Below are positions 1 to 39,000 of a stretch of DNA of 64,000 bases, piece after piece. Position 1 is the first letter of the stretch. Each line of letters begins with the position of its first letter. Position numbers and translations under genes: made by a program. The stretch is from assembly GCA_977017575.1 (NCBI GenBank), contig CDRNVI010000034.1, positions 62,001 to 126,000 on the forward strand. The letters run 5' to 3'. The notes below the pieces were generated by a model. The model saw only the letters and a list, made by a program, of their open reading frames with translations. It was not told where the DNA came from and ran no database searches. The DNA comes from Paramoeba atlantica (lineage: Eukaryota > Protista > Discosea).

Positions 1-3000
1 GCTTGCTCCGCTTGTTTATGCAGGTCGCTTTCGTCCTCTAATCGGATGCGAAGGACCGGGACGGCAGCATTGGGATCTGAGGCCTCATAGTGCCATTTGT
101 CCTCGACCGCACGGAGAGCTTCTCCCATTTCTTCTGGACTTAGTCGCATCAGATGCATGGTGGTGGGATCTAAGAGAAGTCGCATGACAAAACGAGAGGC
201 GTGTTCCCGGATGCGTACCATCTCCGCTTGCCGTTCTGGGGGATGGAATTCAAGATCCCACCAGCGGGCGACAAAGTCATGGTCGGCCTCCACTACGGTC
301 TCTGCGGGATCTGGGTCGTAGTGAATCTCCACAGTCTGCACGAGGTCGTAAAGTGTCTTGTGCTCGATTTGGGCTAACGCATGCAGAGCACCCTCTTTTG
401 TCCCGGCGAATTCGGGGGTAAGAAAAATACTCATGTTGCTGACCTTTGGGTTACGGGTGCAGTTGATCAGCTCCTTGAGACGAGGAACCCCGAGAGTGAC
501 GTTCTTACTCGCGACCCCAGCGAAGTGAAACGTGTTCAGGGTCATCTGGGTCGCAGGTTCGCCACAGCTCTGAGCGGCAATCGCCCCCACCATCTCTCCT
601 GGGTGAACTAAGGCTTGTTGGTACCGGGAGCAGATCTCCCCGCAGAGCCAGTCAAAGGCTTTTTGGTCCAGACGATATTCTTTAATGACTCGACGGGAGT
701 TTAAGTAGCCGTACAGTGCCATACGGAAGGTACACAGCGCGGTATCCAGCCGTAGTCGGGTCCATTTGTTGTGTCGGCCTCGGTTTCGGGTCGGAAGAAA
801 CCTTTCTACGGTATTCAGCACCTCCCCGATGGCTTGAATCACGTGCAGCGGATTCAGCGCGCTTCGCTGGCTGGGACGTTTTCCAACATCAAATCGTTCC
901 TGCGCGAGCTGGATGAGTCGAGGAAAGTGTACCGCGAGACCAAAGTTCTCTTTTCGAGTGTTACGAAAGAGTGCGCGGAAGGATTCGCGTTGCTGCTTCA
1001 CGGAGTCGTACTCGGTCATCAGGGTGCGGTACTCCGCTGGGTTGTCTCGGAAATACTTGCGTACCCCGGGGGAGAGGTACTCGCCACCAAACCGTGGCAG
1101 CACAGTTCCGTCGTCTGCAATTTCGTAACGGTACACCTCCGCAAAACGAGCGTTTCCCCAGGTTACAAACGGAAGATCCTGTTTCACCTCTACCTTGGGC
1201 CCATCCAAGCCATCCTCCCCGTAGGTAAACTGCAGCACGCGGTTTGCGGCGTTTCTTACGGTGCCATCATACCCGACGGTAAGATCCTCACACATTTTTA
1301 TAATCCGTCTCTGAATGTAGCCCGTGTCGGCGGTCTTACATGCGGTATCAATCAACCCCTCCCGTCCTGCCATAGCGTGGAAGAAGAAATCTGGGGCTGT
1401 AAGACCTCGGATGTAGCTGTTTTTAATGTACCCTTTACTCTGGGGTCCGTAGTCATCACGTACAAAGTGGGGAAGCGTTCGACGACGAAACCCAAACTGG
1501 ATGCGTTTGCCCTCACAATTTTGTTGCCCGACAATGGCGCCGATTTGGGAAATGTTCATTTCGTTTCCTTTACTGCCGGCCTTGTACATGCACTTGAAGC
1601 CGTTGTTGTCGCGATAGCCGTCGACAATCTTCTTACCCGCCTCGGTGCGACATTGACTTAGTACCGTGTTCACTTCCGTTTCAAACGCCTCAAGAAGCGT
1701 TTTGCCTCGCTTATCCGAAAAAGTATTATCCAGGGCGTTCTGGCAAATCTTTCTCACTTTTCCCTCCGTTTCGCGGAGTAAGTGGTCCACATCACGCACA
1801 CTTGCCTCCGTTGGGACGGAATCTTTAATCCCGACGCTAAAACTGTGATGAATGAGAAAATATGCCGTGATACGTTGTACAGCATTCATAAAGTCCTTAC
1901 ACGCGTCCGTGCCCTCGAGATTGACAATCACGTGAATCAGCGAGTTGAGCAGATTTCCCACAATCTTTTTTACCACAACCCCATGCAAAAGCTCCCCATG
2001 ACGAATCAACACCGAGAGATCACGAGGGGCCATCAGCGCTCCGTGTGCCGTTGTATCGGGGACATCATTTCCATCCTTCTCATGGGTTTCCAGCGACACC
2101 TTCGGCAAGGCCATTGTGAACGCCTGCTTGCCTGTCCACAACGGTTTAGGCTTTACAATCGCGGGACACACCAGCGAGCTCCACCCCTCCACCCACATAC
2201 ACATACTTTGGAACGTAAATTTATCCAGAAACGTGTTTCGTCGGGTTAACAAATACACCCCCGCGAGACTATCCTGCACGATCCCCATCACCGGGTACGC
2301 CTTCCCTGGACTAATAAAATTCCGCGGCACCATCATAAACTCCATCAACTCCCCTTTCGTCAGCAAACTCTGCGGGAGATGCAAATTCATCTCATCCCCA
2401 TCAAAATCCGCATTATACGGCGTCGTGGTGGACAAATTCAACCGAAACGTGTTAAACGGCAACACCCGGGCCCTGTGCCCCATCATCGACATCCGATGCA
2501 GCGTGGGCTGCCGATTAAACAACACCACATCCCCGTCCCGCATATGCCGCTCCACAATCGACCCCACCGTCAGCACCACCTTGTTCAACCTCTCCGGGTT
2601 CATCTCCTTCAACCCCAGCCGCTCCCCATTCGCTTGCAACACAAAATTCGCCCCGGGGTAGCGATGAGGGCCTCTTCGTACCAGCTCCGTAAGCCCCTCC
2701 CGGTTGTACCCCGTCACCCTCTCCGGGAAGCTCACGGTCATGGCCACACTCCGGGGGACCCCCACCTCATCGACCTCCACGTTCGGGTCTCCCGTAATCA
2801 CTGTTCGCGCACAGAACTCCACACGCTTTCCCATTAAGTGTTGTCGCACTCTGCCGTACTTCCCTTTGAGTCGCTCTGCTACGGACTTCAGCGCTCGGCC
2901 CTGGCGACTGGTGACTTTTTGTTTACGAAAGAGTGTCGTTGTGTTGTTGACATAACAGGAGAGATTCAACTGGAGAGCGGCTCGTGTGGCCGCGATCTCG

Positions 3001-4004
3001 TGCTGCAGCCCGGACTCGAGTTTGTGAGATAACTCTTTGTTGAGTCGGATAATGGCTAAGAGGATATGGGTGAGATCGTCCTCGGAGGGGAGAGCGGCGG
3101 TTCCGCTGTTGAAGGCGACGGAGGGACGGAGGTGGAGAGGGGGGACGGGGAAGATTTCGAGGAGGAGGTCACAGGGATGGGAGGTTGAGGTTGGGGCATG
3201 TTGTGGGTTTGATTTTTGTGGTTTCGTGTTTTGTGTTTTCGTATGGCTCTGTTCCTCCCGGAGATTACGGAAACGGGAGGGGGAGAAACCGAGAAAGGCC
3301 CAATGGGCGGGGTTGACTTTTTCGAAGAGACGAAGGACGTCATGGGCGGTCCATTGGGTGATCTCGGTGGAGGTGCCGTGTTCGGTGAGGAGATCAAACA
3401 GGAGAGTGCCTTCGGTACGACGAAGACGGGGTTGTTTCATGTTACAGCCCAGGGGGTGGTCGTTGTCTTCGTTGTCGTCGTTTTCGTTTTCGTGGTGGGG
3501 GTCTGTGGTGTAAGGGCGCGTAGATTTTGTGGTTTGACATGTGGTGCGACAAATTTGGGATAACGCTCGAAGACGGAAACGGGTGATGGAGATGGTATTG
3601 GCGCTGGGGTAGTCGGGATGGGTGGTGTCGATTAAACTTTGTCCACAACTTTTGCATATGGTTTTTAAGAGTAAAGTAACGACACGGAAGTAGCACAGGT
3701 TGAACATGGGCTCCGCAAGTTCAATGTGACCGAAATGGCCGGGGCACATGGGGTATTTCTGCGTGCACGTCTCACAAATGACAAAAGGGCTAAAACTCCC
3801 AAGCCGAGGGTCACTGGTGCCATTTAACAGCGGAATACCGTTTTTTACGGGAATCGTCTCACACACACCTCTGCGAATCGCGTCTTTGTTTTGCGTAACA
3901 CTGAAAGTTTGCATCGTGGCCTTGTCCATGGCACATAACTCGATCGAGCGTACCTTTTTGAGCTCACGGTCCAGCGGAGGAAGATAATAATTCGCGCCCG
4001 CCAT
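1..4004 (-). CDS. RPB1: RNA polymerase II largest subunit (3' part continues beyond the left edge)
   Basis: Manual translation from ATG at 4004 (MAGANYYLPP). Motifs: DPRLG..CETC..CPGHFGHIELAEP, LMGKRVEFCARTVI, LFNRQPTLHRMSMMGH, catalytic TTPYNADFDGDEMNLHLPQS (~2380-2435), FFFHAMAGREGLIDTACKTADTGYIQRR, GEPATQMTLNTFHFAGV. It is absent from the ORF track, probably because its stop codon lies outside the window. Confidence 0.97.
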   Translation of the reverse strand, partial: MAGANYYLPPLDRELKKVRSIELCAMDKATMQTFSVTQNKDAIRRGVCETIPVKNGIPLLNGTSDPRLGSFSPFVICETCTQKYPMCPGHFGHIELAEPMFNLCYFRVVTLLLKTICKSCGQSLIDTTHPDYPSANTISITRFRLRALSQICRTTCQTTKSTRPYTTDPHHENENDDNEDNDHPLGCNMKQPRLRRTEGTLLFDLLTEHGTSTEITQWTAHDVLRLFEKVNPAHWAFLGFSPSRFRNLREEQSHTKTQNTKPQKSNPQHAPTSTSHPCDLLLEIFPVPPLHLRPSVAFNSGTAALPSEDDLTHILLAIIRLNKELSHKLESGLQHEIAATRAALQLNLSCYVNNTTTLFRKQKVTSRQGRALKSVAERLKGKYGRVRQHLMGKRVEFCARTVITGDPNVEVDEVGVPRSVAMTVSFPERVTGYNREGLTELVRRGPHRYPGANFVLQANGERLGLKEMNPERLNKVVLTVGSIVERHMRDGDVVLFNRQPTLHRMSMMGHRARVLPFNTFRLNLSTTTPYNADFDGDEMNLHLPQSLLTKGELMEFMMVPRNFISPGKAYPVMGIVQDSLAGVYLLTRRNTFLDKFTFQSMCMWVEGWSSLVCPAIVKPKPLWTGKQAFTMALPKVSLETHEKDGNDVPDTTAHGALMAPRDLSVLIRHGELLHGVVVKKIVGNLLNSLIHVIVNLEGTDACKDFMNAVQRITAYFLIHHSFSVGIKDSVPTEASVRDVDHLLRETEGKVRKICQNALDNTFSDKRGKTLLEAFETEVNTVLSQCRTEAGKKIVDGYRDNNGFKCMYKAGSKGNEMNISQIGAIVGQQNCEGKRIQFGFRRRTLPHFVRDDYGPQSKGYIKNSYIRGLTAPDFFFHAMAGREGLIDTACKTADTGYIQRRIIKMCEDLTVGYDGTVRNAANRVLQFTYGEDGLDGPKVEVKQDLPFVTWGNARFAEVYRYEIADDGTVLPRFGGEYLSPGVRKYFRDNPAEYRTLMTEYDSVKQQRESFRALFRNTRKENFGLAVHFPRLIQLAQERFDVGKRPSQRSALNPLHVIQAIGEVLNTVERFLPTRNRGRHNKWTRLRLDTALCTFRMALYGYLNSRRVIKEYRLDQKAFDWLCGEICSRYQQALVHPGEMVGAIAAQSCGEPATQMTLNTFHFAGVASKNVTLGVPRLKELINCTRNPKVSNMSIFLTPEFAGTKEGALHALAQIEHKTLYDLVQTVEIHYDPDPAETVVEADHDFVARWWDLEFHPPERQAEMVRIREHASRFVMRLLLDPTTMHLMRLSPEEMGEALRAVEDKWHYEASDPNAAVPVLRIRLEDESDLHKQAEQ

Positions 4005-4233
4005 TGGGAAAGGTGAAACGTTTTAAAAGAAAGATATTTAAAAAAAAGAGACGTATATTTTGGTTTTTGGGAAAAAAATTACCGTCTTTCACAACGCGGC
4101 TCATTCTTCTGTAGTTTTGGTTCTAAATTCTACACTGTATTTCACAGATATTAGTTCTAAGTACAATGGACATGAGAAACGAGCTCTACTGTAAGTCTAC
4201 TCTCCCATACCGATACTTCGAATTTTACTCAGC

Positions 4234-4686
4234 TTAATATCCTAGTATTTGCTCGCGCATACGCTTTCCTTTTTCTTCATATACCTTCTTTCTATGTAGA
4301 GGAAGCTCACGCCACATCAATCCCGCCCTCTTACCCATCTGTTTAGTACTCATGCCTCGTTTCTGAAGCTCTGGTCGTACCTCCTTAAAAAACATCAAAT
4401 AGGGGTTACACTTGGCAAATTGAGAAAGACGTTTCTTTTGTACCTTTGGATCGACGTGTACCTTTAGTTTATCCACTTTAGGAAGATGAGCTGCGTTGTA
4501 CTCAGCGGCTTTTTTCACATACTCCTCACGACATGCCTTTGGCAAGCCTCTGTACATGACTCCCAGTGCTTTGGCTATTTCGGCTACAGTATAATTTGGG
4601 TTTTCCTTCCGTACAATGGCCCGATTATCCTTCAGAAACGCGAAGAAAGCAGAAAGTCTTTGAAGGGTTACGCTGCGACACAACAT
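4234..4686 (-). CDS. Two-HMG-box protein with a mitochondrial-type N-terminus (kinetoplast-associated KAP-like)
   Basis: First ATG at 4686 gives MLCRSVTLQRLSAFFAFLKDNR..PNYTVAEIAKALGVMYRGL..REEY, then a second box NPYLMFFKEVRPEL..KQMGKRAGLMWREL..RKKVYEE. Confidence 0.8.
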   Translation of the reverse strand: MLCRSVTLQRLSAFFAFLKDNRAIVRKENPNYTVAEIAKALGVMYRGLPKACREEYVKKAAEYNAAHLPKVDKLKVHVDPKVQKKRLSQFAKCNPYLMFFKEVRPELQKRGMSTKQMGKRAGLMWRELPLHRKKVYEEKGKRMREQILGY

Positions 4687-5003
4687 AAACAGGACGAAAA
4701 GAGAAAAAAGGTTTCGAATTACTAAACCCAACTTGAAGAAAAAAGACCCAGAATAAGATCCATGATATCATCCTAAGAAGCTTTATGATATCACCATAAG
4801 AAAGATCTCAGATCAAGAGGTAGACTCTTATCTCGCATTTCACATTTTTGTTTAAAATCGAAATGGTTATTGCTTCTTTCGAAGCCTACCCATACCCTCC
4901 TTCGTCCTATGGCGCAACCCATTCACAAAAATTACGTTTCTTCCCTCGAGAAGGCGATACTCTAAAAAAAGGGAACCTCTCAGATAACCCCCCCCCCCCT
5001 CAA

Positions 5004-27739: not shown

Positions 27740-28845
27740 CCGTGCGCGTAAAAATTAAGGGTAATTATAATCATTGCAGCAAAAATTAGTACAATATTAA
27801 TTAGTGCAGAAAATTGTTCTTAAAAACGCTCTGCACTAATTAGAGGGTTGAAACTAGAGAAACAATCAAGTTGACGATGATGCCGTATCTGAGGATAGCT
27901 GTTTGCAGATGACATAAGCAATACAAAGATCATGGTCAATACTATGATCCTCGAAAGCGTGGTAAAATTATTGTACTAGATCAGAATATTTTGAAAGAAA
28001 TACTTGAAAAATTTCAAAAACTACGTCACTTAAGAGTCCAAATGCCCAAAATCGGCGGACTCTTAAGTAGGGGGGGGTACAGTACGATAGTATTTATAAT
28101 TAAGATTGTAAATTATAATTAAGATTATAAATTATAATTAAGATATCATTCAAATAAGGATATTTTCGACGAAAAAATCCTTAAAATCGTAAGTAAATAC
28201 TATCGTAATTGAATTCAGCACTGTATTGTTTTGTTTTTTTTCATTGTTCATGCCTTAAAGAGCACTCGCGTTCTTTCGGAGGAAAATTTTCGGAAGCCTC
28301 TGGTTCACCGCCCGGACAGACCAAAGTCACGCATAGAATGCTTCTTGGGGCGGTCTATAGTGAGACAGGGTCTTTTTCAGAGACTGACCATACTTTTCTT
28401 GTACATGAAGACGCGGTTAACCTATAGGTAGAACGTCACGAGAAGACAGGTGACGTACAGGATCCAGAAAGGAAGCAAACACGCAATTTGTGCTCTCCTG
28501 GCTTAGTGGAAGCAGACTTAAAGGTTGTTGATGAACCGGACCGAGATGTCCCACGTCCTTCCTGGAACTTTATTCTGCACAAGGTCCGTAAGGCGGGGTT
28601 CCAGTGTTCGAAATGGTCTTTGAAGCGTCTGTACCAAAAGAAATTGAAACTACATTTCTATTTTTAATTGTTATTTAATTGGTTAATGTATATAATTGGT
28701 TAATTGGGCTATTTTTAATTGGTGTCGGTCGAGAAAAGGACACTAATTTAAAGTACACCAATTTTTACGACACTAATTTATCTTTCAAACAACTACTTCA
28801 TGAATACAAGAAAAAATCGCATGGAAAAATAATAAATTGATACTT
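27740..28845 (+). mobile_element. Degenerate Tc1/mariner-like relic (HTH remnant) with a nested ~135-bp MITE at 28079-28212
   Basis: Starts TA|CCGTGCGCG. Remnant AVNL*VERHEKTGDVQD resembles a Tc1 N-terminus. Nested TIR CAGTACGATAGTATTTA / TAAATACTATCGTAATTG. Confidence 0.45.
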
Positions 28846-28848
28846 ATA

Positions 28849-29634
28849 CTGTACCCCTCCCGTTTATAATAGCCTCTTCAATGTTTCAGTTAAAATGGTA
28901 AGAAAATATTTGAAAGAAAAAAACCCACCCCACAGTACACAAGTTTGGGGGGCTATAGGTGTAGGCTGGAGACACCTAGTTGTTCTCGATAAGGACTCGT
29001 CCATCACGAGCATATCTTATGTAAAGACGTTGAAGAAAGTACAATTTCCACAGAATTGTATCTTTCAACAAGATGGGGATACAGCACACACTGCCCGAAC
29101 CTCTATGGAGTACATTACGGGTAGAATGAGTGATGTACTTAAAAATTGGCCCCCCAATTCACCTGACCTTTCCCCCATAGAAAACGCTTGGTCGATGGTC
29201 CAGGACGCGGTGGACGGAAAGACTCCATCGGATAAACCTTCACTTATCCGATGCATACGCAAAGCGTGGTCTCGTTTGCCACAAAAGGTGATCGATAAAA
29301 CTGTTTTGAGTTTTGATGCTCGCCTTAAGAAGTGTATAGAACTCAAAGGCGAAAAAGTGACAAAATGGTAATTGTAATCTAGAAACGCTAGTTGTTCTTT
29401 GTTTCAGCCCACTCTTAGGTGCGCAAAGTTCCTATGGTGAGATCTGCAAAATGCAACAAAAATGAGCTCAAACGGCCACTTGGCCGAAAAAAAAGTGGGG
29501 GGTGACTTTTCGTTGGGCGGGGTTTATTTAAGACGGTGGAAGAAAATTAAAAAAAATCTTCCTCGGTTTGCCAAAAAAAGAACCTATATAGGGGGGGAGG
29601 GGTCGAGGCTATTATAAACAGGGAGGGGGTACGG
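28849..29634 (+). mobile_element. Internally deleted Tc1 element retaining the C-terminal half of the DDE domain (ORF 28895-29371)
   Basis: TIRs TA|CTGTACCCCTCCCGTTTATAATAGCCTC ... GAGGCTATTATAAACAGGGAGGGGGTACGG|TA. Protein motifs VWGAI, FQQDGDTAH, WPPNSPDLSPIENAW. Confidence 0.88.
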
Positions 29635-29912
29635 TAGTTTTGAAAAAACCATTTTCGTTGTTCAAGAGATAATTGGGTGAAAGGGGACTTTTTTTGCCTC
29701 CGAAAAAAACTTGAAATTTTTTCATGGTGGTTTCTCAAACAAAATTTCAGTATTATCCAAGCGAGTGAATAAGCACCATATTTTTGCTACTTACACGACT
29801 CCGCTCTATCTTTTTTTTTTTGCACAGGCTGTAAAATGTATGACAGTATCACTTTTTGTAGTTGGGAACCTTGGATGACGTGCTGATAGAAGCCTGTACT
29901 GTACGATGTGAA

Positions 29913-30530
29913 TTAAGGAGTTCTTGTAATCCGCTGTTTAAGGAAGGTTTTTTCCAGGCTCAGAACCAGAACCAAGATAAGCTCGAATAAATTCTTTGGA
30001 AGAGAAGTCAGATCTGGTGTCCCAGTAAGATCATTCTGATGGACGTTAATAATTTCTAATCGTGCAGGAAGCATATTCAGACACACCTCGCCGCTAAATC
30101 TATTCCAGCACAAATAGACCCACTTCATGGTCTCTGGGAGTGCACTTAAGTCCAACGATCCAGTAAAATAATTTTTATGAAGACTTAGCGCAATTAGCTC
30201 GAACGGTAAATTATCTAAGAGTATCTCACCGGATAACTGGCTTTCTTCTACTTCAAATGTTGACAGAGTTTGTGGAAGGTAAGCTAGGTGCAGCGTTCCA
30301 AACAGATTCATTTCATTCCAACAAATATGAGATACCTGACCTTTTTCATTACATTTTACGTCACTCCAGCTGCACGCTGCCGTAGAAGTACACCAGGATG
30401 AATGTGGGGTCTTTACATCACTAATGAGTCGCGCAAGTTCGTATTCTTGAGGTAGATTCGCGAAGCCAACCTTTGCAGGACTAATCAGAGGTGCTCTTGG
30501 AACGTCTTTAGATCGAACGTATAAGTCCAT
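29913..30530 (-). CDS. Short LRR-family protein (C-terminus possibly frameshifted)
   Basis: First ATG at 30530. KVGFANLPQEYELARL..PHSSWCTSTAACSWSDVKC, followed by LRRs. The last 20 aa lose the LRR pattern. Confidence 0.8.
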   Translation of the reverse strand: MDLYVRSKDVPRAPLISPAKVGFANLPQEYELARLISDVKTPHSSWCTSTAACSWSDVKCNEKGQVSHICWNEMNLFGTLHLAYLPQTLSTFEVEESQLSGEILLDNLPFELIALSLHKNYFTGSLDLSALPETMKWVYLCWNRFSGEVCLNMLPARLEIINVHQNDLTGTPDLTSLPKNLFELILVLVLSLEKTFLKQRITRTP

Positions 30531-30879
30531 TTGACTAAAATACACAAGCTCGTATCTGAATATTCAGCATAACCCGGGGAACGGTATATTATTTAAATTG
30601 CTATTTAAATAATATAGTGTTATTTAAATAATATAGCGTTAAAGTTTCTATTTAAATAATATAGCGTTAACGCCAGAATATTTAAATAGGGGAAAAACGC
30701 AAGTAAAAATGTGGTCTTTAGAAGTACGTACGGTAGTTTAAGGGGCTTCTAAGTTGGTATAGAGCACTTAAAAAGTTGTAAAAAATGATTTTAGCCTACA
30801 ATTCTAGCTATTACCAAAGAATTCTAGGTATTTCCAAAGGAATTCCTCGACAAGTAGGCCCGCCATAGTGGGAAAATAA

Positions 30880-33634
30880 GTGTGTCCCGAAGGACACGGA
30901 GCCCATGGGCCTCCCAACACGAATGCTGGGGCGGTGGTACCCCGAAGGGTACGGAGCCCATGGGCCTCGTTACAGAGGATGAACATACAAATGCAACGGC
31001 AAGTGTGCCCCGAAGGACACGGAGCCCATGGGCCTCCCAACACGAATGCTGGGGCGGTGGTACCCCGAAGGGTGCGGAGCCCATGGGCCTCGTTACAGAG
31101 GATGAATATATAAATGCAACGGCAAGTGTGTCCCGAAGGACACGGAGCCCATGGGCCTCCCAACACGAATGCTGGGGCGGTGGTACCCCGAAGGGTGCGG
31201 AGCCCATGGGTCTCGTTACAGAGGATGAATATATAAATGCAACGGCAAGTGTGTCCCGAAGGACACGGAGCCCATGGGCCTCCCAACACGAATGCTGGGG
31301 CGGTGGTACCCCGAAGGGTACGGAGCCCATGGGCCTCGTTACAGAGGATGAACATACAAATGCAACGGCAAGTGTGCCCCGAAGGACACGGAGCCCATGG
31401 GCCTCCCAACACGAATGCTGGGGCGGTGGTACCCCGAAGGGTGCGGAGCCCATGGGCCTCGTTACAGAGGATGAATATATAAATGCAACGGCAAGTGTGT
31501 CCCGAAGGACACGGAGCCCATGGGCCTCCCAACACGAATGCTGGGGCGGTGGTACCCCGAAGGGTGCGGAGCCCATGGGCCTCGTTACAGAGGATGAATA
31601 TATAAATGCAACGGCAAGTGTGTCCCGAAGGACACGGAGCCCATGGGCCTCCCAACACGAATGCTGGGGCGGTGGTACCCCGAAGGGTACGGAGCCCATG
31701 GGCCTCGTTACAGAGGATGAACATACAAATGCAACGGCAAGTGTGCCCCGAAGGACACGGAGCCCATGGGCCTCCCAGCACGAATGCTGGGGCGGTGGTA
31801 CCCCGAAGGGTACGGAGCCCATGGGCCTCGTTACAGAGGATGAACATACAAATGCAACGGCAAGTGTGCCCCGAAGGACACGGAGCCCATGGGCCTCCCA
31901 ACACGAATGCTGGGGCGGTGGTACCCCGAAGGGTGCGGAGCCCATGGGCCTCGTTACAGAGGATGAATATATAAATGCAACGGCAAGTGTGTCCCGAAGG
32001 ACACGGAGCCCATGGGCCTCCCAACACGAATGCTGGGGCGGTGGTACCCCGAAGGGTGCGGAGCCCATGGGTCTCGTTACAGAGGATGAATATATAAATG
32101 CAACGGCAAGTGTGTCCCGAAGGACACGGAGCCCATGGGCCTCCCAACACGAATGCTGGGGCGGTGGTACCCCGAAGGGTACGGAGCCCATGGGCCTCGT
32201 TACAGAGGATGAACATACAAATGCAACGGCAAGTGTGCCCCGAAGGACACGGAGCCCATGGGCCTCCCAACACGAATGCTGGGGCGGTGGTACCCCGAAG
32301 GGTGCGGAGCCCATGGGCCTCGTTACAGAGGATGAATATATAAATGCAACGGCAAGTGTGTCCCGAAGGACACGGAGCCCATGGGCCTCCCAACACGAAT
32401 GCTGGGGCGGTGGTACCCCGAAGGGTGCGGAGCCCATGGGCCTCGTTACAGAGGATGAATATATAAATGCAACGGCAAGTGTGTCCCGAAGGACACGGAG
32501 CCCATGGGCCTCCCAACACGAATGCTGGGGCGGTGGTACCCCGAAGGGTACGGAGCCCATGGGCCTCGTTACAGAGGATGAACATACAAATGCAACGGCA
32601 AGTGTGCCCCGAAGGACACGGAGCCCATGGGCCTCCCAGCACGAATGCTGGGGCGGTGGTACCCCGAAGGGTACGGAGCCCATGGGCCTCGTTACAGAGG
32701 ATGAACATACAAATGCAACGGCAAGTGTGCCCCGAAGGACACGGAGCCCATGGGCCTCCCAACACGAATGCTGGGGCGGTGGTACCCCGAAGGGTGCGGA
32801 GCCCATGGGCCTCGTTACAGAGGATGAATATATAAATGCAACGGCAAGTGTGTCCCGAAGGACACGGAGCCCATGGGCCTCCCAACACGAATGCTGGGGC
32901 GGTGGTACCCCGAAGGGTGCGGAGCCCATGGGCCTCGTTACAGAGGATGAATATATAAATGCAACGGCAAGTGTGTCCCGAAGGACACGGAGCCCATGGG
33001 CCTCCCAACACGAATGCTGGGGCGGTGGTACCCCGAAGGGTGCGGAGCCCATGGGCCTCGTTACAGAGGATGAACATACAAATGCAACGGCAAGTGTGCC
33101 CCGAAGGACACGGAGCCCATGGGCCTCCCAACACGAATGCTGGGGCGGTGGTACCCCGAAGGGTACGGAGCCCATGGGCCTCGTTACAGAGGATGAACAT
33201 ACAAATGCAACGGCAAGTGTGCCCCGAAGGACACGGAGCCCATGGGCCTCCCAACACGAATGCTGGGGCGGTGGTACCCCGAAGGGTGCGGAGCCCATGG
33301 GCCTCGTTACAGAGGATGAATATATAAATGCAACGGCAAGTGTGTCCCGAAGGACACGGAGCCCATGGGCCTCCCAACACGAATGCTGGGGCGGTGGTAC
33401 CCCGAAGGGTACGGAGCCCATGGGCCTCGTTACAGAGGATGAACATACAAATGCAACGGCAAGTGTGCCCCGAAGGACACGGAGCCCATGGGCCTCTCAG
33501 CACGAATGCTGGGGCGGTGGTACCCCGAAGGGTACGGAGCCCATGGGCCTCGTTACAGAGGATGAACATATAAATGCAACGGCAAGTGTGCCCCGAAGGA
33601 CACGGAGCCCATGGGCCTCGTTACAGAGGATGAA
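30880..33634. repeat. 123-bp tandem array, 22 full units plus one internally deleted unit, with a 7-unit (861-bp) higher-order duplication
   Basis: Unit GTGTG(T/C)CCCGAAGGACACGGAGCCCATGGGCCTCCCAACACGAATGCTGGGGCGGTGGTACCCCGAAGGGT(A/G)CGGAGCCCATGGGCCTCGTTACAGAGGATGAA(C/T)ATA(C/T)AAATGCAACGGCAA. Unit 1 starts at 30880 and unit 23 at 33586 (22 x 123). Confidence 0.97.
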
Positions 33635-33797
33635 GTACTGCCAGGCCGGGACCAAGCGAATTGATGCGTGACATTTTCAGGCGTGTAAGATTGTTTATGT
33701 AGATGGAGCTAAATGTAGTAGTTCTACTGGATACTAGAAACAAGTAGTTCAATTATAATTTATTTAGTTTATAATCGTGCTATAGATGTATTGAAAT

Positions 33798-33866
33798 CTT
33801 CACCCTCACACTCCGCCGAATATGGCGGTGCCGGGCTTGGGACCGGTAACAAGCGTGTTTACGAAG
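33798..33866 (-). ncRNA. Twister self-cleaving ribozyme (with P5 stem, no P3)
   Basis: Minus strand: CTTCG-TAA-ACAC-GC-TTGTTA-CCGG-TCCCAAGC-CCGG-CA-CCGCC-ATATTC-GGCGG-A-GTGT-GAGGG-TGAAG. Pairings: P1 CUUCG/UGAAG, L1 UAA plus GAGGG, P2 ACAC/GUGU, P4 CCGG/CCGG with loop UCCCAAGC, pseudoknots CC/GG and GCUU/AAGC, P5 CCGCC/GGCGG. The core CCGGUCCCAAGCCCGG matches the recalled rice twister core. Confidence 0.9.
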
Positions 33867-34220
33867 GAGTGATAATGTACATTACTTAATAGGGAGTACG
33901 AGAGACGCAAGACACAAGAATAATTATAAGTGTGTAACAACTTATAGTTGTTACAGAATATAGTTTTTATAGTTTTCATAGTTTATGGAGATTGCACGTG
34001 CGAACTAACAAGCAGTTTAAACCATTTTCTTTGATTCATTTGTTTGAGCAGTGATCATTTCTTTTGTCTAACAATGGATTTTTCTTGTTTCGTTTTTTTC
34101 CTGTATCTCGACGCCTTGCCGGGGGTGTGTGAGGTTTTCCTATCGCCGAGAACCTACTCTAAGTAAGTTTATATTTGAACAGAAGAGGTATGCATAGATT
34201 GCCTGAAAAGCCACGAACTA

Positions 34221-34649
34221 CCGTATAGCGCCCCCCCCCGAGTAATAGAATGGGTTTTGGGCCAAAATGGCCAAATCTCTGTTACTGGGGGGTGCTTTTT
34301 TGGTAGGCAGAGACCTTTTTTTCATGGGTGCGTTGATTTTCTGCCCAGACAACCCCGCAACTACACCATTCGCTCCCGCGCAACTACCCTCACCCAGCCC
34401 AGCGACCCCCACCCGCCCAAACACCCCCTCCTACCTCCAACCACCCTCCCGAGCCAAATTTCTGCTACTGGGGGTCAGCCCCAGTATGGCCAAATCTCTG
34501 TTACTGGGGGGGGTCTATTACTGGTCGTCTATTATGTTAAGAGAGAAGCAAGATGTACCATATACCCCTTCTCAGTAAGAGACCCCCTTAGTAAGAGAGA
34601 TTTGGCCATTTTGACCCAAAACCCATTCTCTCACTGGGGGGCTACACGG
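34221..34649. mobile_element. TA-target MITE with ~60-bp imperfect TIRs
   Basis: TA|CCGTATAGCGCCCCCCCCCGAGTAATAGAATGGGTTTTGGGCCAAAATGGCCAAATCTCT ... AGAGATTTGGCCATTTTGACCCAAAACCCATTCTCTCACTGGGGGGCTACACGG|TA. Confidence 0.85.
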
Positions 34650-34787
34650 TATGATAACGACAAATAAACGCTCCACATTGGTGCACTTAAATGAATAAAA
34701 ATATCAAAAATAAGGAAACGGATAAATTGTCTTTACTTTAACGGAAATGGCGTCTTGCTGTGTATTTTTGATTTGACACGATTACAT

Positions 34788-35603
34788 TTAAGGACCTTTG
34801 CAAGTAAAATCATTGCCCGTGTAGTCCAACACCGTGAAACTGTGCGCTATCCCATATTTTCCACAGACATCGTAGAATTTGTTGTTGCTTAAGTCCACAT
34901 AAGTCAGTGTCTCGGGGAGCAGCGATAAATCGATACGCCCACAGAGGCGATTCGCTCGAAGATCGACCGTGTCCAACCCGTTGGGTAAGTCACCTAATTC
35001 CACCTCGCCATCAAAAGCATTCTCATACGCTTGAAAAATATGAAGAGATCGGGGTAACTCCGAGAGCTCGCACCGGCCAATAAACCTATTTCGTGACAGC
35101 GCGAGGGTGACCAACTCCCGAGGAAGTTCCCCCCATGAGATGGGACCACTGAAAAAGTTGTTATACAAAACAAGAGAGTGTAACTGCCGTGGGAGAAACC
35201 CAGCGTTGAGTTCTCCCCCTAACTTTGTGTTGGCAAATTCGATGGTACGAAGTGAGGAGGGAAAGTTTTCCCACTCCGGGGTCCCGATGAGCTGGGTTTG
35301 ACGCAGCGACAGCGTGTGGAGCGTCTCTGGAAGGTAACGCCAGGCTGGGCGCCCGGTAAGATACGAACTTTCGAGCGCAATTTTACCCACAGCCTCGAGA
35401 TCGGGTTCGTACCCGCAGTGGATGCCGTACCAGTGAGCGACGGGGTTATCTTCCCGCCACGAGCTGTGCTGTGGGGTCATGTTACGCACAAAGAGGCTGA
35501 GCTGAAGCTCCGTGGACAAGGCAGCGTGGGTAGGCTTCCCACGACGAGATACCGGAATGTCCGCAGTGGAGAGGAATGGTGGGAAGGAAGAAGTGCTGTC
35601 CAT
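34788..35603 (-). CDS. Short LRR-family protein
   Basis: Likely start at 35603 (MDSTSSF..ADIPVSRRGKP..LSTELQLSLF..HSSW..PVAHWYGIHC), followed by about 8 LRRs. Confidence 0.88.
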   Translation of the reverse strand: MDSTSSFPPFLSTADIPVSRRGKPTHAALSTELQLSLFVRNMTPQHSSWREDNPVAHWYGIHCGYEPDLEAVGKIALESSYLTGRPAWRYLPETLHTLSLRQTQLIGTPEWENFPSSLRTIEFANTKLGGELNAGFLPRQLHSLVLYNNFFSGPISWGELPRELVTLALSRNRFIGRCELSELPRSLHIFQAYENAFDGEVELGDLPNGLDTVDLRANRLCGRIDLSLLPETLTYVDLSNNKFYDVCGKYGIAHSFTVLDYTGNDFTCKGP

Positions 35604-36050
35604 GAGATGTGGCAAAAATAATAAGAATTTTTGAATTTGAAAATATAGAAGCAAATGGGGATTGATTTGCGTAGGAAATATTGTGGTCGCACATCGCTGG
35701 ATGTTATGTCCTGTTTGATATTTTTCTGTAAAGGGTTTGTTTACACGTTTAGCAGCATTATACACATCACATGCATTCGACATTGAAGCTATTGCCTTAT
35801 TATTTTACTATTTTCACTGGATTGAAAACTTGTAAACTATCCTACGTAACTGAGTTAACAACGTTTTACAGAGTGCGTAATTCTTTTTCCGACTGTTTAA
35901 CTCGCACTATGCGGCTGTTTAAATACCGATAAAGCTTGCAGCCAAAGCCGCAGTTGTGCTACGAACAAGTTAATAAAAATCCTAAAGATTATTAGTCATA
36001 CTCTCCACTACACATTACACTACAAAGAAAAAGAAAGGGCATGACGTACC

Positions 36051-39000
36051 TTATATAGGAAGGGGCGGAACGTAGATAGGCAGAATACCGACGTGAAAAA
36101 GTCCTGCACAGGTAACTAGTGTCATACTCAAAACTAATACGAGAGTGCGTAAGAGTGTCCATACCCAACCAGGAAGCTGAGAGAGACGCTGACGAATTCC
36201 TTCAGCATTACTCCTTTTTTCCTCCTCCAGGTCGTCATCTTCGCGCCCTCGAAAGTAATCGTCTACGTCATCGCTTCCTTTTTTCGAAAAGAACCGATCG
36301 GCCTCATCCCGGAGGTCAAAGTACAACAGCGTAGGAGGAAGCTGAACATGTTCCATATCCCCGACCACCTTTTGGTTTTCCCCCAGACGTAAATCCTCAA
36401 TGCCAGGGGGGAAGTGAAATGCCTCAAGGTCACCCTGCAGGTCGTTCTCCGCTAAGTCACACTTTAACGTGTCCTCTGGGAGCCACACGTCATCCAGCGT
36501 CCCTTGTAGACGATTTGCACGAAGACTGACATCCGTCAGAGAAGGGGGAAGGGCCACAGAGGCCAAATTCCCCTCCAGTTTGTTCCGTGCTAAATCCAGA
36601 CACTGTAACTCGGAGAAAAATCCAAGCAACAGTCCCTGCGCCATCCCCTCCGGAGCGGCTTTCTTGTTCCCCCCACTTTCTTCCTCTTGCACCCCTTCCC
36701 GAGGAAACCTACCCCCCTCGTGTGGTTCCACACCCTCGGGGCTCCCCGGGGACGGTCCAGAACCCCTCCCCTCCCGAACCCGACCCCAGACCGCCCCCAA
36801 GTCCCCCGAGAGCCCACAATGCCGCAACCCCAGCGAGCGTAACCCCGAGGGCAACTTTGGCTTTCGTACCCGCCCCCCTTTTTCTTCCTTTTCCCCGAGG
36901 GCTTCCTCCCCCGGGGCCCTCCCCCCCCCGAGCACCTCCCCCAGGTCCGAGCCCTCCAACGGGTTCTCGCTGAGGTCCAGCACCCTCAACGAGGCCGGGA
37001 GCAGCCCGGGGTCCATCCGGTGCAGCGCCCCGGTGAGCTGGTTGTTCGTTAACTCCAGCCGACGCAGCCCCGGGGGGAACCACCCGGGGCTTAGCCTTTC
37101 TACCCTCCCCGTGATCTCGTTGTGGGCGAGATCGAGCCGGGTGAGGGCCCGGGGGAGCGGGGGGGCGGCCTCCAGGCTACCGTAGAGATTGGTGTGGCGT
37201 AGCCCCAGGACGTCCAGCCCGGGGGGGAGGGCGAGCTGCTCCATGGCCCCGTTGAGCCCGAGGTTGCCACTGAGGTCGAGGTAGGAGAGGGCGGGGGGGA
37301 GGGGGAGGGCGTGGGTCTCCCCGGTGAGGCGGTTGGCCCGGAGGCTGAGGTAGTGAAGCCCGGGGGGGAGACGCAGGGCGTCGAGGTTACCCACGAGGTC
37401 GTTGCCGTTGAGGTCGAGTCGTTTTAACGGGGGGGGGAGGGAGAGACGGGGGAGTTCCCCGATGAGGTTGGTGTTGGCCAAGTAGAGAAACTCCAGGAGG
37501 GGGGGGAGGGTGAGACGAGCGACGTCCCCGTGGCAAGGGTTGTCGTGGAGGTCGAGGGTGGTGAGCGCGGGGAGGGGGGTGAGGTGTTGGATCGCCCCGG
37601 TGAGGTGGTTGTTACCCAACGCGAGGTGTTTGAGGGGGGGAGGGAGAACAAGGGAGGGGAGGTCCCCCACCAGTTCGTTCCCGTTTAAATCGAGATGGGT
37701 GAGTTTTGCAGGGAACGAGACGGTGGTAAGGTTGCCGGTGAGGTGGTTGTGGGCGAGGGAGAGGTATTCCAGCGGTGGGGGCAGTTCTTCGTCTTCTAAA
37801 TTTCCGAGCAACCCGCACCCTTTGAGCCCAAGATGGGTCAGACCCGAGGGAAGGTACCCAGCGTGGAATTCACCGGAGATGTCACGGTTCTCGCTCAGGT
37901 CAAGGTGGGTAAGGGTCTCGGGTAGGTAGAGCTCATGGAAGTTCCCCTCCAGACGGTTGTGCCCTAGGCGTAGCAACGTCAGGCCCGGGGGAAGGGGTTG
38001 CAGTGCGCTGATCTCTCCCTCAAGCAGGTTCTCGCTCAAATCCAGATGGTCGACATCCGGAGGGATGAAATCCAGGGTGAGCTCTCCCTGGAGCCGGTTG
38101 AAACTTAAATCAATGAAAGTCAACGTCAGGGGCAGCTCCAGATGTTGCACGTCACCGTAGAAGTCGTTGTTCGCCAGGCTAAGGTAGGTAAGAGTCTGAG
38201 GAAGGTTCAGTAGGGCGACATCCGCCGTCAGCTGGTTGTTCGAGAGGTCGAGGTAGCGCAGCTCCGACGGGAGGTCCAGCTCGCTCAACTCACCGGTAAG
38301 AAAGTTCCCATTGAGCTCCAGACGGCTTACCCCAGTGGGAAGCACCAGGTCGTTGATATTCCCCCGCAGTCCCATGTCCATTAACCCGACATGTGTGATG
38401 CTTTCCGGCAGTCGCAGCTCTCGGGCCTCGCATCCGATTCGTAGCGCGCTGAAGTCCACCCGCTGCAACCCCTCTGGCAGACGCAGCCGCGTGAGATCCC
38501 CTGTGACCTCACAGTGGGACATGCCAAACCGAGTCAGACTCTTGGGCAACCGCAAAGTCTCAATTCGCCCGTGTAGGCGGTTGTGGCTGAGGTCCAAGAA
38601 ACTCAGCCCCTGGGGAAGCACAAGCTCAGATACATCCCCTGTCAATGCGTTCTCGCACAGTATCAAGCTCCGCAGTGTAGCAGGCAGCTGTACACGCGTG
38701 AGATCCCCCGTGAGCTGGTTGTGCCGTAACCCGAGCTCACGCAACGTAGGGGGCAGCGGAAGGTCCTCCAAGGACCCGCTAAGCTGGTTAAAACTCAGCC
38801 CCAGCAACGTAAGTCCAGGAGGAAGATTCGTGAGATCCGATATGGATTCAAACTCATTATGACTTAAGTCCAACACCTGCAATGTCGGGGGAAGCCCTTT
38901 ATGAGAAATATCCAAGCGCCCACGTAACCCGCGGGTACTCCACTTAATCCCCACCACATAGGGTTCTGGAGTATCGGATGAGGATGACGAGGGCCCACTC

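Follow-up and report, generated by a model that had tools for sequence, protein, structure and literature searches.

All real genes of the window, i.e. the whole 64,000-nt stretch analysed here, lie on the minus strand and form a unidirectional cluster that includes SURF1, an RsmB-type methyltransferase gene and LRR genes. In kinetoplastid gene clusters of this unidirectional kind, transcription generally runs through the intergenic regions. The best homologues of the SURF1 protein come from Prokinetoplastina PhF-6, Perkinsela and Neobodo, at only 36-40 % identity, and the genome is kinetoplastid-like. Within an intergenic region of the cluster, a twister ribozyme lies in sense orientation, i.e. 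on the strand of the genes, as had been stated in the preliminary description; it is preceded by a short leader and followed by an AT-rich spacer and a long tandem array that ends at a truncation junction (Table 1). Three overlapping long ORFs (921, 865 and 929 aa, positions 30804-33671) were rejected as artefacts of the 123-nt array, and the Pfam match of one of these to DUF5919 was considered spurious. The window copy has no ORFs of its own and hence no recombinase.

Table 1. Features of the twister element copy in the window (positions are those of the 64-kb stretch; twister parts are written as RNA)
Feature	Position	Strand	Basis or remark
Element leader, 17 nt, begins CAUUAUCAC	33861..33877	(-)	Start of homology in L021-L026
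Type-P1 twister with P5, without P3	33798..33866	(-)	Direct reading, R1 score, covariation
P1	33866-33862 (CUUCG) + 33802-33798 (UGAAG)	(-)	Pairing read from sequence
L1, U33861^A33860 A33859	Predicted scissile bond U33861^A33860	(-)	Read from sequence
P2	33858-33855 (ACAC) + 33811-33808 (GUGU)	(-)	Pairing read from sequence
T2 pseudoknot	G33854 C33853 + G33836 C33835	(-)	Pairing read from sequence
6-nt linker between T2 GC and P4		(-)	Read from sequence
P4	33846-33843 + 33834-33831 (CCGG/CCGG)	(-)	Pairing read from sequence
L4, UCCCAAGC	33842-33835	(-)	Read from sequence
P5	33828-33824 (CCGCC) + 33817-33813 (GGCGG)	(-)	2-nt link between P4 and P5
3′ L1, GAGGG	33807-33803	(-)	Read from sequence
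T1 pseudoknot (L4 CCC with GGG of GAGGG)	C33841-39 + G33803-05	(-)	Pairing read from sequence
AT-rich spacer, ~178 nt	33620..33797	(-)	Sister copies are 91-97 % identical here
Array of 22.3 tandem 123-nt units, GC ~60 %	30878..33619	(-)	Tandem Repeats Finder, period 123, 97 % matches
Truncation junction, then unrelated ~310-nt dispersed repeat	30570..30877	(-)	Family matches all end at 30878

On direct reading every element of the twister pairs, including both pseudoknots T1 and T2, and the complete ribozyme described earlier for this site was recovered with its coordinates and its cut site between 33861 and 33860 exact. The P4 hairpin (CCGG-UCCCAAGC-CCGG) matches the Rfam consensus exactly, P5 reads CCGCC-AUAUUC-GGCGG with a single A before the 3′ strand of P2, and all positions of the catalytic core agree with both the family consensus and the Rfam consensus. 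The minimum-free-energy fold, which was restricted to nested pairs, recovered P2, P4 and P5 at a z-score of -1.68, i.e. not strongly favoured. The site has the complete structure of a type-P1 twister to which a P5 stem is added, and it is predicted to cleave itself.

Scanning the site with Rfam at the gathering score gave no match, and a relaxed scan returned only a local match of Twister-P5 to the P4 hairpin (17.9 bits, E 0.27), next to snoRNA and sRNA matches that were dismissed as chance. For the Rfam twister-P1 model (RF03160), the gathering score is 67.2, whereas the window copy reached 18.3 bits, with E ~8 genome-wide. Over the entire genome (45.7 Mb) this model found at least 56 twister-P1-like sites, the best of them at 39.1 bits (E 8.6e-6), i.e. 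no copy in the genome reached the threshold. The Rfam P1 consensus has a P3 stem-loop and no P5, while alignment to it shows the opposite in all copies here; the low scores are therefore explained by a missing P3 and an added P5 in this lineage. A second covariance model (R1) was built from 12 twisters of other subfamilies in the same genome, with the subfamily of the window copy left out and with training copies that differ in their P1, P2, P4 and P5 sequences. Run over the whole window with filters off, this independent model scored the site at 44.7 bits (E 1.8e-9), with a runner-up at 11.8 bits (E 1.2), which rules out a chance motif. The covariance-model check that the preliminary description had proposed thus stayed below the gathering score for Rfam and was significant for the lineage model.

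Further evidence is given by covariation among 26 distinct twister copies, compared with 500 shuffles and with slid controls. In this sample, 89.4 % of cells were paired versus 69.4 % after shuffling, a level reached by 0 of the 500 shuffles; changes on both sides were seen in 142 cells versus 53, and the covariation score was 0.497 versus at most 0.104 in all slid controls. Compensatory changes occurred in P1, P2, P4, P5 and the pseudoknot T1, e.g. CUCC/GGAG, ACAC/GUGU and CCCU/AGG as variants of P2, and CCGG, CCAG/CUGG and CCUG/CAGG as variants of P4. One P4 pair was found as GC in 14 copies, AU in 11 and UA in one, and one T1 pair as CG in 19 and AU in six, being broken in none. Since T2 is invariant (26 of 26 copies), it is uninformative on covariation. 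Judging from this pattern of substitution, the twister family of the genome is real, with the window copy among its full members.

Genome-wide, R1 gave at least 130 twister matches, so that the search for further copies suggested at the outset was answered by this model as well as by RF03160, and in public DNA runs the read depth over the twister was around 23 times the single-copy depth. The number of distinct loci is lower than that of matches because the assembly holds haplotig pairs. The twisters examined all belong to repeats with the plan twister, spacer, hairpin array and inverted copy of the head, and are set back from the 5′ edge of the repeat by 14-37 nt. In pairwise comparisons of 20 loci, related copies could be aligned from a few nucleotides upstream of the twister on into the downstream region, and the tandem array was always located downstream of the twister, with a period that differs between subfamilies (22, 25, 63, 78 or 123-124 nt). 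Between diverged subfamilies, the alignable part is confined to the leader and the twister, a pattern that speaks for selection on the ribozyme. In most loci, the first 36-59 nt, i.e. the leader and the start of the twister, recur in inverted form 150-1400 nt downstream; such inverted head copies are present at no fewer than 10 loci, recombinase-encoding ones among these.

The five close relatives of the window copy, on contigs C21, C26, C54/C99 and C2/C12 (L021-L026), share the 178-nt spacer and the 123-nt array, with 2-10 units. Their homology starts at a shared CATTATCAC, 17 nt before the cut, which corresponds to window position 33877, and their upstream flanks are unrelated. Contigs from the public DNA runs diverge at 33878, i.e. 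at the same repeat boundary. The leader thus reaches from the 5′ boundary up to the cut; the 5′ strand of P1 is part of it, and the predicted cleavage would remove it. The copies on C21, C26, C54 and C99 share the ribozyme sequence of the window copy letter for letter. The 123-nt unit contains three hairpins with UUCG tetraloops and GGCCCAUGGGCU(C) palindromes (-58.7 kcal/mol, z-score -4.3), while the spacer showed no significant structure when folded (z-score +0.15). As a guess, the hairpin array could package or protect an RNA with a 5′-OH end.

The full-length copy on C26 measures 2733 nt. Downstream of its array, the first 19 nt of the element recur as an exact reverse complement, and immediately adjoining this is the complement of the last ~118 nt. 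Read backwards, this inverted stretch is the junction of the 3′ end with the 5′ end, and it is therefore an internal complementary region (ICR) by the DIRS-type definition, which requires complementarity to both element ends as in DIRS-1 (PMC6681497). This ICR is an exact reverse complement of the junction and includes a copy of the 17 nt upstream of the predicted cut. Both ICR halves were read in this one full-length copy only, and elsewhere inverted head copies only.

When the tail and the ICR of the full-length copy were searched against the window, no other match was found, the 1.4-kb tail being missing; likewise, there is no inverted head copy or terminal inverted repeat of the window copy within the window. 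The dispersed repeat that follows begins exactly at the end of the array and contains internal AT-rich palindromic repeats of 19-28 bp (TATTTAAATAATATAGCG type); searched as the stretch 30877-30546, it has at least eight near-full copies on other contigs, at 83-99 % identity. The window copy is therefore a dead fragment, consisting of the head, the spacer and an array expanded to 22 units, that lacks the ICR, the tail and ORFs and cannot transpose.

Contig C69 is 99 % identical to the window over 28435-30880 and 33872-36380, and between these flanks carries a 2.6-kb LRR-gene segment in place of the twister-array block. The block is thus polymorphic or specific to one duplicate. A simple insertion does not account for the difference between the contigs: either the tail of the element or the LRR segment was removed by one or more additional rearrangements. 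On C69, the LRR-type segment (L036, G000:C69, 4856-7489) is itself interrupted by a ~1.9-kb insertion that starts with what we take to be a spliced-leader-like motif (ACAGTTTCTGTAC) and a GT donor, and two more insertions of 1.3 and 1.07 kb are located at the equivalents of window positions 29588 and 29984. The framing in the preliminary description, a twister within a polycistronic cluster, is not supported as such: this twister is not singular to the gene cluster but makes up the 5′ head of retroelements that form a dispersed family, present here as a 3′-truncated copy in a block that is absent from C69. The window copy remains useful as a clean example of an intact twister and as a polymorphic marker at this locus.

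Coding parts were found in several relatives. At 12 twisters, a Pfam Phage_integrase domain lies 2.6-4.1 kb downstream on the same strand, as compared with around 0.65 such pairs expected by chance (130 x 92 sites), bearing in mind that the copies are not independent. At one of the loci (L035, on C12), the twister (462-548) and an inverted head copy (690-725) are followed, in this order, by a 356-aa ORF without Pfam match, a 290-aa ORF encoding a tyrosine recombinase (Phage_integrase, 43.8 bits) and a 580-aa ORF whose RNase H-like match is weak (RVT_3, 20.8 bits, below the cut-off) and for which a protein search found unnamed relatives only; next to it follows a host glutathione peroxidase gene. 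A further relative (L034) has Phage_integrase at 42.3 bits, and RVT_1 was matched at 29.8 bits in another subfamily (L027). Within the subfamily of the window copy itself, a locus on C29 (L033) has its recombinase ORF together with the twister, an array (7.9 units of 124 nt) and an inverted copy of the head. The last 1.4 kb of the C26 copy contain no long ORF, and remnants resembling RT (FLSADM.HWFHQ) and RNase H (NPADGLTR) were recognized there by eye. Where they survive, the coding parts would thus run from a gag-like ORF through a tyrosine recombinase to RT/RNase H, in some copies as decayed remnants, the assignment of RT in the recombinase-linked copies being weak.

A LINE headed by the twister was also considered, given two loci with a 1613-aa RVT_1/zf-RVT ORF 3 kb downstream of a twister. 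This was not accepted because the two loci are 99 % identical including their flanks and because an inverted head copy lies at ~550 nt; a short twister element beside a separate LINE is suggested instead. At these loci (L030, G000:C65, 1546-7962; L031, G000:C7), a seemingly intact non-LTR retrotransposon with a 200-aa ORF1 and a 1613-aa ORF2 containing RVT_1 and zf-RVT lies ~1.3 kb downstream of the short twister element. In all, at least 150 RVT_1 matches were obtained in the genome, many of them within long open frames.

We consider it likely that a real type-P1 twister with P5 forms the 5′ head of a family of tyrosine-recombinase retroelements of the DIRS/VIPER-like kind. A full-length element would consist, in this order, of the 17-nt leader, the twister, the spacer, the hairpin array, the ICR, the coding parts and the 3′ end. 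Its RNA would be made within a longer polycistronic or read-through transcript, in which the twister would fold and cut at the U^A step, leaving a 2′,3′-cyclic phosphate on the upstream RNA and a 5′-OH on the RNA starting AAACACGC, and thereby setting a defined 5′-OH end of the element RNA. In a model borrowed from DIRS-1, the lost leader may then be rebuilt from the ICR during cDNA synthesis.

In the window, the twister is in sense orientation within a minus-strand cluster, and read-through RNA of the cluster should therefore be cut at the predicted scissile bond of this copy too. It is plausible that such cutting of the polycistronic precursor is a by-product, most likely a neutral one considering that the site is intergenic and the copy unable to transpose, and the consequence for the host is probably little.

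Conversely, the host might have adopted the site for RNA processing, keeping the twister to cut the polycistronic precursor between genes instead of trans-splicing and polyadenylation. The position of the ribozyme, in sense and in an intergenic stretch of a unidirectional cluster, fits this, and so does the fact that it is intact and identical to its sister copies, although recent copying accounts for the identity. Against host adoption, the 99 %-identical contig C69 has an LRR segment instead, i.e. the block is not fixed at the locus, and the twister is accompanied by other parts of a mobile family, namely its leader, its spacer and its array. Moreover, sister copies lie antisense to neighbouring genes, such as the C26 copy with respect to the adjacent citrate synthase gene. 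A crude tally over a small sample of loci gave around seven copies in sense and around five in antisense orientation, suggesting that orientation relative to genes is not constrained; with copies in both orientations, read-through transcription cannot serve them all. Considering also that the twister heads a multicopy mobile element, it is not a host-built device for transcript processing, and we regard adoption at this site as very unlikely.

Less far-fetched, yet still improbable, is an inert relic, i.e. a copy with an intact motif that is untranscribed, or misfolded through e.g. alternative pairing with flanking RNA, so that nothing is cut. As this reading would have it, none of the public RNA runs contains the stretch, the one possible RNA run covering only 35931-36000, the copy is truncated and cannot transpose, and the z-score of its nested fold is unremarkable, but P2, P4 and P5 already appear in that fold, the catalytic core agrees at every position with the family and Rfam consensus, and clusters of the kinetoplastid type are generally transcribed through their intergenic regions. 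The idea that units between two ribozymes are excised and ligated into circular RNAs, as in retrozymes, is the least likely of the three and has hardly any chance of being correct. Some members do stand in tandem, and the twisters 6.53 kb apart on C54 could give rise to unit-length RNAs with 5′-OH and cyclic-phosphate ends. The window, however, holds a single twister and thus no unit that could be excised, and the dispersed copies have one twister and an ICR rather than two direct repeats each bearing a ribozyme.

Like the family RF03160 (clan CL00120), the copies here have L1 U^AA, P2, the T2 GC, a P4 loop UCCCAAGC, GAGGG and P1 in canonical order; in contrast to it, they lack the P3 stem-loop, carry P5 between P4 and the 3′ strand of P2, and score far below gathering. 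According to a 2021 paper, the twister ribozyme had been without a confirmed biological function until that work, which linked twister variants to a schistosome LINE; the variants of Perere-3 are a precedent for retroelement RNA released by a ribozyme (PMC8501958). There, too, a ribozyme of the twister class is located at the 5′ end of a retrotransposon, shares a transcript with sequence upstream of it and has been proposed to set the element RNA free. Perere-3 is, however, an RTE-type LINE that uses target-primed reverse transcription and in which the target-site duplication supplies part of P1, whereas the element described here is of the tyrosine-recombinase type, contains a canonical twister wholly within itself and has an ICR that includes the cut-off leader. 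The class of retroelements headed by canonical twisters here (tyrosine-recombinase, DIRS/VIPER-like) differs from that of the schistosome LINE.

Ribozyme-released retroelement RNA has further precedents in the HDV-like ribozymes of R2 and in the HDV-like L1TcRz within the Pr77 hallmark of the trypanosomatid L1Tc/ingi non-LTR elements (PMC3185411, PMC4035085). L1TcRz likewise cleaves itself at the 5′ end of a retroelement in a polycistronic lineage and frees the element RNA from co-transcripts, but it belongs to the HDV-like rather than the twister class and to LINEs and SINEs rather than a recombinase element. An HDV-like ribozyme has its cleavage site at its own 5′ edge, so that nothing is lost, whereas the twister is predicted to cut within the element, 17 nt from its start. 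The internal copy of the leader offers a testable model of how an element could tolerate a ribozyme that cuts within it, and the parallel with the ribozymes of trypanosomatid LINEs suggests that self-cleavage is recurrent for mobile elements in polycistronic units.

An ICR complementary to the start as well as the end of the element, as known from DIRS-1 and read here in the C26 copy, connects the family with DIRS-order elements (PMC6681497, PMC7192593), and its putative ORF order, gag-like, recombinase, RT/RNase H, would fit that of the kinetoplastid VIPER and TATE elements (PMC6681497). VIPER and TATE differ in having split direct repeats where the elements here have an ICR, and the same paper makes no mention of a ribozyme for them (PMC6681497). 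Hairpin arrays are no described feature of DIRS-order or VIPER-like systems. A search of the full-text literature, with many subscription journals outside its coverage, found no paper that joins twisters with kinetoplastids or with tyrosine recombinases, in line with the earlier remark that no twister had been described in this lineage. It is tempting to speculate that canonical twisters are the device by which a whole radiation of tyrosine-recombinase retroelements in a kinetoplastid-like protist defines its 5′ ends, with each family keeping a leader copy in its ICR from which the end cut off inside the element would be rebuilt; we see the chances of this wider proposal as evenly balanced. 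If true, it would give canonical twisters a biological role in nature, and DIRS-type replication would have a variant that depends on a ribozyme and is suited to genomes whose genes have no promoters of their own.

In addition, the genome contains local accumulations of the family. More than 20 twister matches fall within ~130 kb on G000:C54 (573-702 kb), which suggests a nest of twister elements, and a cluster is also present at G000:C99 (43-108 kb), which looks like a haplotig of this region. On C54, members of subfamily D are arranged in tandem with a 6.53-kb period. The twisters of this subfamily (L020, L027, L030, L034 and L035) have UCCAAAGC as L4 and GAUGG as 3′ L1, i.e. a C-to-A change in L4 is matched by G-to-U opposite and T1 pairing is kept. 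Just upstream of the twister in the window, the region 34185-34664 looks like another high-copy dispersed repeat: in the public DNA runs its summed contig depth is around 3000-5000, as compared with around 37 in the single-copy flanks, many loose contig ends fall at 34316, 34590 and 34640, and an 18-bp C-rich tandem repeat occupies 34375-34428.
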